Positions 39,883-46,699 of a stretch of 55,366 bases of DNA are shown piece by piece. Both the position numbers and the translations under genes were made by a program. Within the stretch, counting starts at the first letter, position 1. Every line of letters begins with the position of its first letter. Source of the stretch: Hyphochytrium catenoides (lineage: Eukaryota > Protista > Hyphochytriomycota); NCBI GenBank assembly GCA_900088475.1, contig FLMG01000940.1, positions 1 through 55,366 of the forward strand. Direction: 5' to 3'. The notes under the pieces are model-generated. The model had not been told where the DNA came from and made no database searches. It was given only the letters and a program-made list of their open reading frames with translations.

Positions 39883-41341
<1,459 letters not shown>

Positions 41342-41659
41342 TCACCTCAGAACCAGCCAAAATCTCTGTGAAGACTCCGTCTGAGTCTTTCTGAAGCTGG
41401 AGAAGAGCACTGCGCTCTTGGGCCGAAGTTGGAAGGTGACAGACAGCAGGAGAGACGCTGTGGAAGGTGTTGGATCCAGAGCCGCTCGCTTTGAAATCAA
41501 GGGAGAGAGGGGTCAGAAGCATTCTGATAGCTCGTCATCTCTATCGCGCTCTGTCTCTCTCCACTCTTCCCGGTCTGTGCGTCTCTATCTCTTCTCTCTT
41601 CTCCTCATAACCTAATCATTATGCCTCTCTGTCTGCCTGCCTGCAGGGTCATTTGGGCT

Positions 41660-41920
41660 GCTTCTTCTCTCTCTCATTCCTTCCTCTCTCTCCAGTGTTC
41701 CCTCTTTCAAACCTACGACTTTGTCACCTTCCTCTCCTCTGTCTTTCTCGCTTTCTCTCTCTTTCTCTCTCTTCCTCTTCCTCTCTCTCTCTCTTCCTTT
41801 CTTCCTCTCTCTCTCTCTCTCCTATCTCCTGATCTTCCTCTCTCTTCCTCTCTCTCATCTCTCTCTGTCTCTCTCTCTCTCTTTCTCTCTCTCTGTCTCT
41901 CTCTCTCTCTGTCTCTCCTC
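41660..41920. repeat. (CT)n-rich tract upstream of beta-tubulin
   Basis: Nearly pure pyrimidine on the + strand. Confidence 0.9.
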
Positions 41921-43198
41921 ACCATCTTCCTTGATCTTTGTCACACAGCACGTCTCACACACCCTCCCCCACCCAACCCCAACCGTCAGATTCTCAACCT
42001 CAATGACCCGGGTAAGGCTCGAATAAAATACCCGAATAGGATGTCTAAGCACAGCATAAACACACTCAATGGAGTTCCACTTCAACTCGACTCAAGCCAA
42101 ACCCGAGTCCCCTGTTCAGAAGGGGAGCCAATGGAAATTTTGACTTTTCAAAAAGTGACATCAAAGCCGTGAGGGGCTTCGTACAGTAGAAGGTATTCTT
42201 TTTGCCAAGTGATATTCCAAACGACCCTCCATACCAATCAGTCTATTGATACAATTGTACTCGGGGCATCTGGAATAAGAAGCCTACTTATCTGGAACGT
42301 GGCGGAAGGCGCTACAGGTCCTGGCACGAACGGCACTCAAGATGTGGCTGTCACCTGTCATGAAGAGAACAGCGAAATCTCTGTTTGCCATAGACTGTCG
42401 GAGACTGTCAGCAAGGAGTCCTAGCTTCGCATCTTGGCAAACGATGAGGAAGCTAGACTCCCAGGGAATTTCTTGAAAGATTACGAAGGCTACGAGGTGG
42501 GCTGCGGGTAGCTTAGTTTGGTACTGCAGCAGCCTTGCTGTCTCAAGGATCCTTGACTTGCTCTCTGAGCCATGAGGAGCGATGAAAACCCAGCTGTCTC
42601 AGAGGAGATTTGCTGGTAGGATATAATTTGTGCTTTCGCTGGCTATGTCATCACTCAGCGCGTTCCCTGTACTTGAACCTTAATTCTGCTTCTCAGAGAC
42701 ATGTCTGAGTGCTCGGGGGTTCGGGTCGTCACGTGTGCTTCCCTAGGTCCTCACCTCTCTTCGAATTGCCTTTGTGCCTTGTGCTTCATGCTTAACCTCT
42801 CCGGCTACATCCTCCTCCTCTGTGCTGTCTGGCTATCACCTATTTCACGATCATCTAAGCCTTTAGGTAAAGAGAATTGTCACCTCTAGCTCTTGACTTG
42901 TTGAATCCTAAAGTTCGAGGTATGCTAGCCCTATTATTACAATGTGCAACAAGTCTGACGATGATAAAAGCTATTCATTGAAACCTTAACATAACAACGG
43001 TGCGGTGGGCTGGTGCACGGGCAGGAGCTATAACAAGCAGATAGAGCTCGCTGCGTCCACTAATAGCCCTGATAAACGTAAAGAATGAGCGAGCGAAGAA
43101 GAAATGTTGGGAGAGCTAGGTCTTAGAGATGGATGGCCTTCTTCTACGAATTGCCTAACAGAGACAAAAGGAAAAGAGAGGCTCCCTCCTAAACAGAC

Positions 43199-45187
43199 TT
43201 AGCGCAGCCTCTTCTGCGGAGCGGTTGTTGGATTCTTGGCCTTCTTCTTGGCAGCTTTAGTCGTAGGGACCGCTGTGGCAGGCTTTGCCGTACCTGCCGG
43301 CGCAGTGGTCATGGCAGCGGCTGACGTGGGATTCTTTGCTACCGTTGGGGCCACAGCAGAGGTTGGAGTGGCTGCCGTCATCATGGCTCCAGCGTTGTTC
43401 ATGTTGTTGGTGATGCCATTCATCATGTTCTGGATGGTGTTCATGTTCCCGTTGATGGCCGTCATAGCGTTCATGTTATTAACAGTGTTCATCATATTGT
43501 TGATGACGTTCATATTGGTGTTGATCGCATTCATGTTGGCGTTGATGGCATTCATATTGTTCATATTGACGGCGTTGATGTTCCCGTTATTATTGGCTCC
43601 TTGAGCGAGAAGGGCGAGCTGATTGCTGACAAAGTTGAGGCACTGTGGGACTGTTAGTAGCTGGTTCGCTGCCACTTGCCCATTGACGAGAACGGCTTGC
43701 TGTTGCCCGTTGACGGGTACAGGCTGCCCATTGGCTGCTAGCACGGCACCATTCTGTTGAACGACAGGAACGTTGCCATTGTTAGCACCAGCGGCGCCAA
43801 CCATATTGTTAACGGCAACAATTGCACCGTTCTGTTGTTGTTGTTGAAGAACCTGGCCATTAGCAGCTGGTATATTGCCATTCACCGCCCCAGCTCCGCC
43901 TACCATGTTGTTGACTGGGACGTTGCCGTTGATACCTGCTGCCGCTTTGTTGCTATTCACTGGTAACTGCTGCTGCTGCTGTCCTCCAGCCACTTGGCCA
44001 TTCGCGCCGCCTACTGCGGCCCCATTGTTCATCACTGGTACTTGGCCGTTCACTCCGCCTACCACGGCACCGTTGTTGTTCAATGGAACTTGACCGTTGA
44101 CTCCTCCGACGACCGCGCCATTGTTAGCTGCCGGGATGTTTGCGGGGTTACCGTTATTTCCCATGCTATTCGCCGGCGCCTGTCCATTTACTCCTCCTAC
44201 AGCCCCGCCATTGTTCCCGTTAACGCCGCCTCCCATCCCGTTAGCTGCCAGAACATTCAGGGCATCGTTCAAGTTTAATAGGCCCTGAGAGGTAACCTGG
44301 CCTGTTTGCACGTTCCAGTCCGTAGTGTGGAACCCAAAGCCCGTATCGGTCACGGCCAGGCCCAGGAAACGAATGTTGCCTTGAATGTTGGCCGGTGCCT
44401 GCCATTGAAGGCCGACATACACACTCTGAGTGCCAAAGACCTGTCCCAGCGCGGTCTGAAGCTGAGCTAGCTGCGGATCTGCCACCTGGACATCGCCGTC
44501 CTTGAAGAGCAAGGTCGAGTGGATTGCTGCGACGTTTGCATTAGGAGGAAGCCCCAAAGGTTGGGCACATGCCTGGAAGTTGGCCATGCGGGGTGCCGTT
44601 TGGCCATTCTGATCCGTTGCCAGGCCAAAGTCGGTGAAGGTGCCAACAGCTTGGCCTGTTGCCGTGTCAATAGCGAAAAGGAAGGCTCCATCAAGAGGTG
44701 TACCTGTCCCTTGTTGAGGGGGATTCTGCTGTGCGTTTTTGATGGGCTGCGCAGCGTTAGACACAAGGGAGAGCGTGTAAGTTTGTCCTGGCTGGAAAGG
44801 GATGGCGTTGTTCAGCAGGTTGTTAGGATTGAGCTGGCCCTTTGCTGGGGCGATGGTGACTCCGATGACCTGGTTGTTGGCGTTAATGTCCATATCATTG
44901 TTGTGGAATGTGGCTAGAGATCTAGCAATGGCCATTGGATTCTGTCCTTTCCCCTGGGCATTAGTGTATGGGTTCTGAGCTCCGTTGCTCTGAATTGTAG
45001 GGGCAATAGCGTCAGAGTTAGCGATAATATCCGCCGAGACTTTGCCCACAGAGAAAATTAACTGGCCAGCCTGAGGATCAAGGGAGCAGAGGACACCTGG
45101 CATCCACAAGGCGCCACTGGTAAACGCGTACGCCTTCTGTGAGACAGAGAATAAGATAGCGGTCAACAAGGACGAAGAGAGCTTCAT
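43199..45187 (-). CDS. Intronless predicted secreted protein, 662 aa: signal peptide, Reeler-like domain, Asn/Gln/Gly-rich repeats, Asn/Met heptads, Thr/Ala/Pro/Lys tail
   Basis: Uninterrupted 2-kb ORF. MKLSSSLLTAILFSVSQKAYA|F looks like a signal peptide. FQPGQTYTLSL..LDGAFLFAID..GQAVGTF..FQAC..AIHS..LQWQAPANIQGNIRFLGLAV follows the Reeler pattern, judged by eye. The internal repeats differ mainly at synonymous sites. Confidence 0.88.
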   Translation of the reverse strand: MKLSSSLLTAILFSVSQKAYAFTSGALWMPGVLCSLDPQAGQLIFSVGKVSADIIANSDAIAPTIQSNGAQNPYTNAQGKGQNPMAIARSLATFHNNDMDINANNQVIGVTIAPAKGQLNPNNLLNNAIPFQPGQTYTLSLVSNAAQPIKNAQQNPPQQGTGTPLDGAFLFAIDTATGQAVGTFTDFGLATDQNGQTAPRMANFQACAQPLGLPPNANVAAIHSTLLFKDGDVQVADPQLAQLQTALGQVFGTQSVYVGLQWQAPANIQGNIRFLGLAVTDTGFGFHTTDWNVQTGQVTSQGLLNLNDALNVLAANGMGGGVNGNNGGAVGGVNGQAPANSMGNNGNPANIPAANNGAVVGGVNGQVPLNNNGAVVGGVNGQVPVMNNGAAVGGANGQVAGGQQQQQLPVNSNKAAAGINGNVPVNNMVGGAGAVNGNIPAANGQVLQQQQQNGAIVAVNNMVGAAGANNGNVPVVQQNGAVLAANGQPVPVNGQQQAVLVNGQVAANQLLTVPQCLNFVSNQLALLAQGANNNGNINAVNMNNMNAINANMNAINTNMNVINNMMNTVNNMNAMTAINGNMNTIQNMMNGITNNMNNAGAMMTAATPTSAVAPTVAKNPTSAAAMTTAPAGTAKPATAVPTTKAAKKKAKNPTTAPQKRLR

Positions 45188-45619
45188 GGCAATCGGGCAA
45201 AAGAGGCACCAAGCCACTGTATCATGAGAAAGAGATCGACGTGGCAAGGGAGCAGGAACGAAGACGAAAGCGTCGAGATAAAGCAATCGGCCCGCTGTGG
45301 CTGTGCGTGGCAGAAAGCTCTGAAGGCTGCAGGGGGACAGCTAGCGCGGGTGCAGCGCTGCTTTTGTCCGTTTGGAAGGTAGGAGGAAGGTTTGATAATG
45401 AAGAGCTCACGCCTACGACCTTTCCTGCTTGTCCCATAGTCTGGTTCTTCTCCCATCTTCCCTACCTTCTCCTTTCCCTTCTCTTTGTACACAGCGTCTG
45501 CGTCCTCTACTCCTTTCTCTTCCGAGAGTGGGGAGGACATCCTCCTGCTTCTCTGGTGTGGTGCTCTAGAGATGTGACTATGGAAGCAGGAGGCCGATGG
45601 CGCAACTCTACCTCTCTCC

Positions 45620-45819
45620 TTTGCGATCTCCTCTTCTCTCTTCCTCTCTTCTTTCTCTCTTTTTTCATGTCTCTGCTCTCCTCTCTCGCTCCATCTCCTC
45701 TCTCCCTCTCCCTCTCTCCCTCTCCCTCTCTCTCTGTCTCTCCGTGTTTCTCTCTCGCTCTCCCTGTTTCTCTCTCTCTGTCCCTGCCTCTCTCCCTCTC
45801 TCCCTCTCTTTCTCTCTCT

Positions 45820-45893
<74 letters not shown>

Positions 45894-45905
45894 TCTGTTT
45901 TCTCT
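45620..45905. repeat. (CT)n-rich tract upstream of the secreted-protein gene
   Basis: Directly visible. Confidence 0.9.
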
Positions 45906-46699
45906 TCGTCCTCCCCTTGCTCTGGCCGGGTCCATCACATCATCATTCTGAGAGATTTATTACTCAAAATAGACAGATGATTAGAGAGATGCAATAGGGA
46001 AGCCTAAACGAAGTGAATCCTGGTGATTGTCGCGATATAAATGTCGAGTCAGAGCGTGTAAGAGATATACAAGCCCAGCGGAGAAAGACAGAGTGGGCAG
46101 AAGACAGGCAAAAAGAAAGGGCCATGCACACCAAAAGAGGTTTCTAATTCTTAGGCCTAAGTCTAAAAGAAAGATGTTGAGGATGTCAGAGGTATCGCCA
46201 GGAAGTATAGCTCTATGATATTTTGCCAAGACAGAGTAGAGCCCAGTAGTGTGTTTGGAACAGACCACTAGACGTGAATGTGCCCAGTGCGTACAACCAG
46301 AATTCAAAGAATTCTCCCATCAAAAGACAGGCTGGCTTAGGTTAGAACCCATCACACCTTCGAATTTCCTAAACTAGCTATGTAAAGAATGGATTGTTTA
46401 GGATAGGTTTTGGTCCACTTATTATCATGCAACTCCCGAGAAACAGTTATTTATCCTAGGGAATATATGTAGAAGGGCAGAGTGGTCTAGACGGTTGATG
46501 TCTTCCCTGTTATTACCTTAGCAGGTTTAGGATTGAGCTAGACTTTGTCCCTTTCGCACCGACCAGAAATGGTGATGATTTGTAACAGCTGTATTATTCC
46601 ATGACACAGCAACACAACAGCTAACACAACCACCACCTCCTTCCTATCACTTTCTATGTCGTTGCCTAGTAATGCTCTCTCTTCTTCTTCTCCCTCTTT

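Follow-up and report, generated by a model that had tools for sequence, protein, structure and literature searches.

Most of what is known about Reeler domains comes from matrix and immune proteins of animals; the Reeler-DOMON-cytochrome b561 ferric reductases are a known example of metal/redox Reeler proteins. Adhesins of the Als/Flo type, which reside in the fungal wall, combine a signal peptide and a binding head with a Ser/Thr stalk and a GPI anchor. As regards ligands, the reelin_N domain of F-spondin binds heparin (PMC3117680), and the insect proteins Noduler, Hdd11 and BmReeler1 have been described as sticky binders of microbial wall polymers (PMC10321396).

Within the stretch of DNA analysed here (the window; 55,366 nucleotides), we identify a gene which, with a probability that we place at roughly 55%, codes for a eukaryotic surface protein of a hitherto undescribed family, secreted and lacking an anchor, with a diverged Reeler-type head and a low-complexity tail. 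It adjoins a tubulin gene; no other housekeeping gene is complete within the window. An exact look-up of the two proteins located neither of them in the collection searched.

43199..45187, minus strand: complete single-exon CDS, 662 codons plus stop (stop at 43199-43201)

This ORF, the longest in the window, has no internal stop on translation and is counted from its first ATG at 45187; a longer version of 695 aa, which was also listed, starts at an upstream TTG. In the region coding for the tail, the two alternative sense frames contain 32 and 15 stops, the GC3 of the ORF (0.59) is close to that of the adjoining tubulin gene (0.60), and every other open frame in the window has at most 13 N+Q per 80 aa. 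Taken with the 9:2 ratio of changes between repeat units described below, these observations place the composition of the ORF beyond chance. The predicted protein begins with a signal-peptide-like segment, followed by a globular head and then by about 300 nearly uncharged residues rich in N/Q/G/A/V/M, behind which come a T/A/P linker and a Lys/Arg end.

The head does have relatives. On sequence grounds it is a member of an unnamed family comprising some 40 proteins, found in Chytridiales fungi, the vampyrellid amoeba Leptophrys and environmental eukaryotes. An exhaustive phmmer search recovered 11 true relatives, including P0001 (E 1.3e-10, the best) and P0011 (E 2.3e-4), and a profile search gave 27 matches, five of them already found by phmmer. 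The match of a leave-one-out family profile to the window protein is strong (E 6e-25 for 1.8e9 sequences) and delimits the conserved domain as follows.

44306..45127, minus strand: family domain, aa 21-294 (leave-one-out profile, 104.8 bits, profile positions 1-228)

Used as a single query, the head gave no match in a word-indexed protein search, metagenomes yielded distant relatives only (at most 33% identity), and neither tblastn nor a six-frame HMM search found further copies of the family in the window. The members share the motif string FTNGTLLPxYLC ... FHN ... LDGxFxYAxDTATG ... C ... VGIVH ... WxAP ... GFG, and those with a named source are Chytriomyces sp. MP71 KAI8618829.1, Podochytrium sp. 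JEL0797 KAJ3062481.1, a protein of Siphonaria sp. JEL0065 and transcripts of Leptophrys vorax. In the family tree, the window protein falls in a supported clade of seven rows (95/90) together with all the named chytrids. Most relatives consist of the head, a short Thr/Ala stalk, and then a TM helix or a hydrophobic C-terminal end, with the TM helix and a short basic cytosolic tail behind it being the prevalent ending; others have no C-terminal part, some are short secreted forms of about 200 aa, and a few carry long low-complexity tails with A/G/T, A/S/T or A/T/V/N compositions. A literature search found no paper on the family and none describing a family with the architecture of the window protein, consistent with the view of an earlier note on this DNA that this architecture matches no described family; to our knowledge, no member has a known function.

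The relationship of the head to Reeler domains is transitive and structural, because Pfam reports no family for the whole window protein at E <= 10 and none for the head alone, and because sequence searches for solved structures with two family profiles and the best Reeler-scoring relative returned chance-level matches or none. Three relatives do pass the 21-bit gathering score of the Reeler model PF02014, namely P0038 (27.9 bits), P0011 (24.3) and P0001 (21.6), although, of the 36 family members in the alignment, just four are recognised by Pfam. Further, in a language-model search 70 of the 100 nearest clusters are Reeler. AF2 without an alignment gave a pLDDT of 34, as against a pTM of 0.72 with the 36-row family alignment, the blocks from model residue 141 onward being mostly at pLDDT 80-95. 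The F-spondin reeler (2zot/3coo) was the top PDB match of this model in three structure searches: Foldseek-PDB gave E 8e-6, a second search aligned 128 of 138 residues (rmsd 2.9 A, about 20% identity) with a Z of 9.6, and in an independent wide search it was, with a Z of 8.2, the only match at Z >= 8, although the margin of these two scores over generic beta-sandwiches (Z 7.6-7.7) is small. Structure searches of AFDB and the ESM Atlas likewise placed Reeler-domain proteins at the top. The Reeler-like head proposed in the earlier note is thus supported indirectly, through the three relatives and the predicted model, and the domain is best viewed as a very divergent Reeler-type beta-sandwich.

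44306..44890, minus strand: Reeler-like beta-sandwich core, aa ~100-294 (AF2 model and structure searches)

The earlier note had confined the globular domain to 44315-44806 (aa 128-291), a boundary that has to be moved, since the conserved domain begins just after the signal peptide and spans aa 21-294. It opens at the N-terminus with a conserved strand that carries C34; a loop of variable, N/Q/A-rich sequence (aa ~35-90) and the FHN motif (H95) then lead to the beta-sandwich core, in which two insertions (aa ~190-199 and ~231-254) are specific to the window protein. Within the family, C207 is invariant and C34 nearly so, the structural alignment begins at the position of C34, and the two cysteines probably form a pair which stabilises the head. 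With 14 D against 8 K/R and no E at all, the head is acidic, which makes a glycan or wall polymer a more plausible putative ligand than a polyanion.

The state of these residues also bears on whether the gene works at all, i.e., whether it could be a decaying, unexpressed copy, or whether the true protein is anchored in the membrane through an unrecognised splice. A look-up of sequencing runs listed none from RNA, which would suit an unexpressed copy. The branch leading to the window protein (2.79) is by far the longest in the family tree, and several near-invariant residues (the NGT sequon, Y12 and the PKS motif) are missing, which is what a decaying copy might look like and which suggests that the head may have altered or lost its ancestral function. 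However, all eight invariant family columns are kept, the 662-codon ORF is intact, the codon usage is like that of the neighbouring housekeeping gene, the repeats of the tail are under constraint, and the Chytriomyces relative, as annotated, likewise has this layout and lacks an anchor. As for splicing, one of the window-specific insertions coincides with a GT...AG stretch of 60 bases that stays in frame, but the 5' site of this stretch is poor, and retained in-frame introns were rejected as the origin of the insertions. A non-working or misread gene is hence highly improbable.

The N-terminus preceding the domain has the layout of a secreted protein, as the earlier note had supposed.

45125..45187, minus strand: signal-peptide-like N-terminus, aa 1-21 (predicted cleavage A-Y-A / F22, read from sequence)

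It consists of MK, a hydrophobic core and A-Y-A ahead of F22. The core is only moderately hydrophobic (Kyte-Doolittle 0.98). A hydrophobic start of 17-25 aa is found in all complete relatives, where a small residue directly precedes the F-T-N-G-T with which the conserved mature sequence would begin; the members agree in where they would be cleaved, a pattern that would fit secretion. The same note's claim that a TM or GPI segment is lacking holds as well: the best 19-aa Kyte-Doolittle mean is 1.21, compared with 1.9-2.9 in the anchored relatives, and the last 25 aa, which end in K-R-L-R, have a mean hydropathy of -1.23. By analogy with characterised Reeler domains, the head might serve as the ligand-binding part, with a glycan or wall polymer as the candidate ligand. 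Where most relatives have an anchor, this protein and a few of its Chytridiales relatives have an extended low-complexity tail instead. Such a tail could keep the head at a distance from the surface of the cell or the matrix of its wall, or else enmesh it there. The likeliest form of our reading is accordingly phrased as an anchor-less surface- or wall-binding protein with a fast-evolving disordered stalk.

The tail itself can be divided into the following segments.

43568..44263, minus strand: N/Q/G/A/V-rich low-complexity region, aa 309-540 (one charged residue, K414)
43988..44221, minus strand: four 16-aa repeat units, aa 323-400, ending GG(V/A)NGQ(V/A)(P/A) (TRF; gap between units 1 and 2)
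43967..43981, minus strand: QQQQQ, aa 403-407 (composition/repeat scan)
43832-43846, minus strand: QQQQQ, aa 448-452 (composition/repeat scan)
43598..43675, minus strand: short non-repetitive island, aa 505-530 (third Cys, C516, unpaired-looking)
43391..43579, minus strand: N/M/I-rich 7-aa repeats of the N-M-N-x-I-N-x type, aa 537-599 (two registers)
43259..43390, minus strand: T/A/P-rich mucin-like linker, aa 600-643 (composition)
43202..43258, minus strand: basic C-terminal end, aa 644-662 (6 K, 2 R; not hydrophobic)

The measured composition is N 15.4%, Q 9.2%, G 11.3% and A 15.1%. Michelitsch and Weissman reportedly proposed in 2000 that Q/N-rich prion-like domains be recognised by at least 30 Q/N per 80 residues. 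The tail exceeds this value in its densest 80-aa segment (34 N+Q, aa 522-601) and has 27-31 across aa 381-520, whereas K414 is the sole charged residue in aa 309-617, leaving uncharged runs of 105 and 203 aa; the N/Q-rich, low-charge tail of the earlier note is thereby confirmed. TRF describes the 16-aa units with a period of 48 (2.8 copies, 77% matches) and the 7-aa repeats with a period of 21 (3 copies). Between the units at aa 353-368 and 369-384, nine codon changes are synonymous and only two non-synonymous, a pattern which, at the sequence level, marks the tail as translated and under protein-level constraint. The island at aa 505-530 is the most hydrophobic stretch of the tail and contains the above-mentioned Kyte-Doolittle maximum (at aa 510). 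A coiled-coil reading of the N-M-N-x-I-N-x repeats was rejected, since their 3.5-residue periodicity was reached by 591 of 5000 shuffles and is not significant.

Two accounts of this tail depart from that of a surface-binding protein with a fast-evolving stalk. The first holds that it is a self-assembling module, forming an extracellular amyloid, a glue or the matrix of a cyst or sporangium wall, which displays the head and sticks to polyanions through its basic end. Besides the density of N+Q, V/A/I/M are abundant in the long uncharged runs and Pro accounts for just about 5%, and the repeats have been kept as protein while their silent sites diverged. Additionally, the tail has no N-glycosylation sequon where 7.1 would be expected (P = 2e-4), in contrast to about four per head in the relatives, which fits a glycan-free surface. 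The third, unpaired-looking cysteine would suit a possible covalent variant, in which disulfide dimers form via Cys516 or a transglutaminase cross-links Gln to the C-terminal Lys. Nevertheless, a word-indexed protein search with the tail found no homologue, its best score in a language-model atlas was only 0.50 (to mucin-like viral glycoproteins, and no lead), the long-tailed relatives differ in composition in the manner expected of a neutral spacer, and the basic ends of the window and Chytriomyces proteins are alike in composition only. Self-assembly is therefore unlikely, and its specific form, in which the charge- and sequon-free tail makes an amyloid-like or cross-linked extracellular polymer displaying the Reeler-type head in a cyst or sporangium matrix, is slightly more so; amyloid or glue behaviour as such is speculation. 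The free variation of tails across the family and the lack of a homologue for the N/Q tail instead suggest a lineage-specific, fast-evolving stalk as opposed to a conserved assembly module.

The second account, which we consider doubtful, is that the tail is a neutral repeat expansion on a soluble secreted protein and that the biology lies entirely in the head, in the form of glycan recognition or metal/redox chemistry. The freely varying composition among relatives and the tandem repeats of 48, 21 and 3 bases would be compatible with such an expansion; further, the near-invariant His95, His223, Asp174 and Asp281 of the head could form a site, and the structural neighbours include ferric-chelate reductase 1, cytochrome b561 proteins and the copper-binding YcnI. 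Against this, the 9:2 ratio argues for constraint on the peptide, the absence of sequons and near-absence of charge over 300 aa would be hard to obtain via neutral drift, and no DOMON or cytochrome b561 domain is detected by Pfam.

Under the preferred reading of a secreted surface protein with a diverged Reeler-type head, a strongly diverged Reeler-like family is now seen beyond animals, in chytrid fungi, a vampyrellid amoeba and environmental eukaryotes. It offers a natural comparison series, with one type of head set on a TM anchor, a GPI-like end, nothing at all, or long low-complexity tails, of which that of the window member is the most extreme. Should this tail assemble, it would be a rare case of Q/N-rich, charge-free sequence acting as extracellular material and a candidate part of the poorly known surface or attachment apparatus of chytrids; if it does not, the gene would be an ordinary lineage-specific secreted protein.

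Among known systems, the F-spondin Reeler (PF02014; PDB 2zot, 2zou, 3coo) is comparable in being an extracellular beta-sandwich directly after a signal peptide, an arrangement predicted for the window protein too, and in its cysteines, one close to the N-terminal end and another within the core. Unlike it, the family carries an extra, variable loop (up to ~60 aa) that separates the first strand from the core, the window protein alone has the two further insertions, and its acidic head differs from a heparin-binding domain. The insect Reeler-only proteins (Noduler, Hdd11, BmReeler1) are small and secreted, are among the top structural matches, and share the overall layout of the short family members (~200 aa); however, they lack a low-complexity tail and any detectable sequence similarity to the window protein, and they are animal immune proteins, while the window protein comes from a zoosporic microbe. 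Similar in layout is Chytriomyces KAI8618829.1 (P0006), from the same clade, which has the family head (33% identity), lacks a TM segment and continues into a long tail of low complexity with a Lys-rich end. Yet its tail is Ala/Gly/Thr-rich and that of its tandem paralogue Ala/Ser/Thr-rich, in contrast to the Asn/Gln-rich tail of the window protein, with which no alignment is obtained; BLASTP likewise did not align the basic end of the window protein with that of P0006, both Chytriomyces genes have an intron whereas the window gene has none, and no gene order common to the two loci was seen. The Q/N-rich prion-like domains, such as the N domain of yeast Sup35, resemble the tail in their high N+Q and very few charges, but they are intracellular, whereas the window tail follows a signal-peptide-like start and is far richer in Val/Ala/Gly/Met. 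Finally, although the window protein differs from the Als/Flo fungal wall adhesins in having no GPI signal, a stalk rich in N/Q/G as opposed to Ser/Thr and a head of unrelated fold, it parallels them in the succession of predicted signal peptide, putative binding head and low-complexity stalk, including a short T/A/P mucin-like stretch.

The longest ORF of the window, in which long ORFs are rare, suggesting an intron-rich eukaryote, encodes a 662-aa protein with the following layout:

43199-45187, minus strand: CDS, an uninterrupted open frame of 662 codons plus stop
aa 1-21: signal-peptide-like start as read from the sequence, with Met-Lys, a hydrophobic core and an A-Y-A end right before F22
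aa 21-294: globular head
aa 309-617: near-uncharged region, split by its sole charged residue (K414) into uncharged stretches of 105 and 203 aa
aa 403-407 and aa 448-452: QQQQQ
43391-43579 (aa 537-599): 7-aa repeats of the N-M-N-x-I-N-x type, in two registers, each with about four repeats
aa 600-643: T/A/P-rich linker
aa 644-662: basic end with 6 Lys and 2 Arg

The earliest ATG lies at 45187, and the version in the ORF list extends to 695 aa via an upstream TTG. Translation recovers the order that the earlier note had proposed, i.e., a signal peptide, head, N/Q tail, T/A/P linker and Lys/Arg end. Its remark that no TM or GPI segment is obvious also stands, as a hydropathy scan gave nothing resembling a TM helix (best 19-aa value 1.21), nor was there a GPI-like signal. 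The protein is rich in Asn (15.4%), Gln (9.2%), Gly (11.3%) and Ala (15.1%), with a maximum of 34 N+Q per 80 aa. All further open frames of the window hold at most 13 N+Q per 80 aa, and hence this composition does not simply reflect a bias of the DNA at large.

As far as sequence alone shows, the tail is coding. The remaining two sense frames of the tail contain 32 and 15 stops, GC3 is 0.59 for head and tail alike (0.60 in the neighbouring tubulin gene), and the best two 16-aa repeat units (aa 353-368 versus 369-384) are separated by 9 synonymous and only 2 non-synonymous codon differences; Tandem Repeats Finder reports unit lengths of 48, 21 and 3 bases in the gene. Beside these figures, a dead or mis-modelled gene appears highly improbable. 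A 60-base in-frame GT...AG stretch at 44429-44488 (aa 234-253), corresponding to a helix-forming insertion unique to this protein, might in principle be a retained intron, but its 5' site matches the splice consensus poorly. In the N-M-N-x-I-N-x repeats, Met and Ile are spaced 3 and 4 apart in a heptad-like manner; a 3.5-residue periodicity across aa 537-599 is not significant. The neighbours are unrelated housekeeping genes, and long microsatellites flank the gene:

near 13 kb: USP7-like piece
36.7-38.7 kb, plus strand: DExH helicase pieces
39883-41241, minus strand: apparently single-exon tubulin gene, 2 kb downstream (Pfam Tubulin 1.6e-52, Tubulin_C 7.6e-42)
about 41620-42170 and 45600-45950: (GA)n/(CT)n microsatellites, one on either side
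51-53 kb, minus strand: RhoGEF-like gene

The microsatellite tracts give spurious S-L-S-L and R-E-R-E ORFs, and the assembly has a gap at about 1300-1420, where a block of N (X in the translation) lies inside a low-complexity ORF, 1056-2336. The window stretch is also present in three small runs labelled 'DNA?', which may simply be the assembly source runs; a search of the run listings gave no RNA run.

A word-indexed protein search with the head returned no matches. An exhaustive phmmer search with the head against 1.84 billion representatives recovered 13 hits, 11 of which display an obvious common signature, in which a signal peptide precedes F-T-N-G-T-L-L-P-x-Y-L-C at the mature N-terminus, followed by F-H-N, L-D-G-x-F-x-Y-A-x-D-T-A-T-G, a second Cys with V-G-I-V-H after it, W-x-A-P and G-F-G. 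The other two (P0002 and P0012) are repeat proteins and were discarded as relatives. A profile search yielded 27 family members, 5 of them already among the phmmer hits, and a profile of the family from which the window protein had been withheld matches that protein across aa 21-294 with 104.8 bits (E 6e-25 in a 1.8-billion-sequence space). Named members comprise hypothetical proteins of the Chytridiales (Chytriomyces sp. MP71, Podochytrium sp. JEL0797 and Siphonaria sp. JEL0065) and several Leptophrys vorax (vampyrellid amoeba) transcripts; the remainder are metagenomic or belong to unlabelled assemblies. A maximum-likelihood tree places the window protein in a supported 7-row clade (95/90) together with all named chytrids, on by far the longest branch (2.79 changes per column).

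Four independent lines indicate that the head is a divergent Reeler-like domain, as judged by transitive homology and predicted fold, rather than a plain member of Pfam PF02014. Three relatives score above the PF02014 cut-off of 21 bits, at 27.9, 24.3 and 21.6, and matches to this model occur in 4 of 36 family members. In a language-model search with the head, 70 of the 100 nearest clusters were Reeler (top score 0.89, 184-192 shared features). AlphaFold gave a pLDDT of 34 for the head without an alignment; supplied with the 36-row family alignment, it reached a pTM of 0.72 and a mean pLDDT of 71.8, most of the core lying at 80-95. The best solved match of this model in every structure search was the F-spondin reeler domain, with Foldseek giving E 8e-6 (TM 0.59 by target) and VIA-align Z 9.6 (rmsd 2.9 A over 128 of 138 residues, 20% identity). 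It was the sole match with Z >= 8 (Z 8.2) in a wide search independent of Foldseek. Beta-sandwiches of unrelated proteins (cohesins, YcnI and complement MG domains) come next, not far below, at Z 7-7.7. Family sequence profiles reached no solved structure. The Reeler-like assignment of the earlier note is supported indirectly, through relatives, language-model neighbours and fold, including the AlphaFold and Foldseek check it had suggested, and not through the window protein itself, which has no Pfam match.

The C-terminal part varies freely between family members. In the majority form, a short run of Thr/Ala leads into a TM helix rich in Gly/Ala/Val, and the short basic tail on the cytosolic side often ends in Leu-Leu. 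Others consist of the head only (about 180-250 aa; relatives P0009-P0011, P0023, P0026 and P0029, and loci L003-L006), or possess a hydrophobic C-terminal stretch resembling a GPI signal (P0039 and locus L007). Anchor-less long low-complexity tails are found in a few members of the chytrid clade. Among these, a Chytriomyces protein (P0006, KAI8618829.1) has an A/G/T-rich tail with a Lys cluster at its end and its tandem paralogue an A/S/T-rich one, in contrast to the N/Q/G/A/V tail of the window protein, which is the longest in the family and the only N/Q-rich one; the basic ends of the window protein and P0006 are alike in composition only. Neither a word-indexed protein search nor a language-model search found a homologue or look-alike of this tail. 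The two Chytriomyces paralogues are adjacent on MU614568.1 (L001:1569-2899 and L001:3640-4967), each interrupted by a single intron behind the first conserved strand and ending in a low-complexity A/S/T-rich or A/G/T-rich tail, whereas the window gene lacks an intron.

The protein contains no Glu, which is largely explained by the low-complexity tail and by the Glu-poor heads across the family (1.1% on average, 0 or 1 in several, and charge generally low). More striking is the absence of N-x-S/T sequons: there are none among 102 Asn, while region-wise shuffles predict 7.1 and only 2 of 10,000 shuffles gave zero (P = 2e-4). Relatives' heads carry about 4.3 sequons each in the family alignment, one of which, the N-G-T of the mature N-terminus, is nearly invariant. 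This N-G-T is lost in the window protein, P0006 and the Siphonaria head (P0038), and the heads of the latter two are likewise sequon-free.

We favour, at a probability of roughly 0.55, a binding protein that lacks an anchor and is associated with the cell surface or wall. Its Reeler-like head would bind a ligand, and the protein would be tethered to or entangled in the surface matrix by its long, uncharged tail together with the basic end. The acidity of the head makes a neutral glycan or wall polymer seem a likelier ligand than a polyanion. That the tail is instead a neutral stalk seems rather unlikely. The amyloid or glue role suggested in the earlier note is a slightly fainter prospect, given that tails vary freely among relatives, even though the tail composition, the constraint on the repeats, the missing glycosylation sites and an odd Cys516 are all compatible with it.

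A full-text literature search on Reeler domains in chytrids and fungi offered no description of the head family or of this architecture, in keeping with the earlier note, which did not recognise the architecture as a described family; for chytrids it brought up a single unrelated paper, and matches for a secreted fungal Reeler domain were only arthropod papers and a Plasmodiophora effector list. The conserved Leu-Leu-type endings of the short cytosolic tails in anchored relatives (P0001, P0005, P0008, P0017, P0018, P0020-P0022, P0024, P0027, P0028, P0030 and P0032; e.g., ...K-A-P-L-L-L, ...E-P-L-L-M-N-S and ...D-V-L-L-E) resemble dileucine signals for endocytic or lysosomal sorting, and members of the head family may serve amoeboid or phagotrophic cells as trafficking receptors. 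Matches in AlphaFold DB and the ESM Atlas are Reelin-domain proteins, ferric-chelate reductase 1, spondins, insect defence proteins and Reeler-cytochrome b561 proteins. A further AlphaFold DB cluster match (rank 21), the 571-aa A0A138ZXJ7, is named 'LysM domain-containing protein' and has a Reeler-like N-terminal domain at aa 40-179 that matches the model, hinting that such heads are paired with chitin-binding modules in other organisms. Unlike in the canonical Reeler domain, the first strand (with C34) and the core are separated in this family by a variable loop, which is absent in the 180-aa members and spans about 60 aa in the window protein, where two extra insertions (aa ~190-199 and ~231-254) are peculiar to it.
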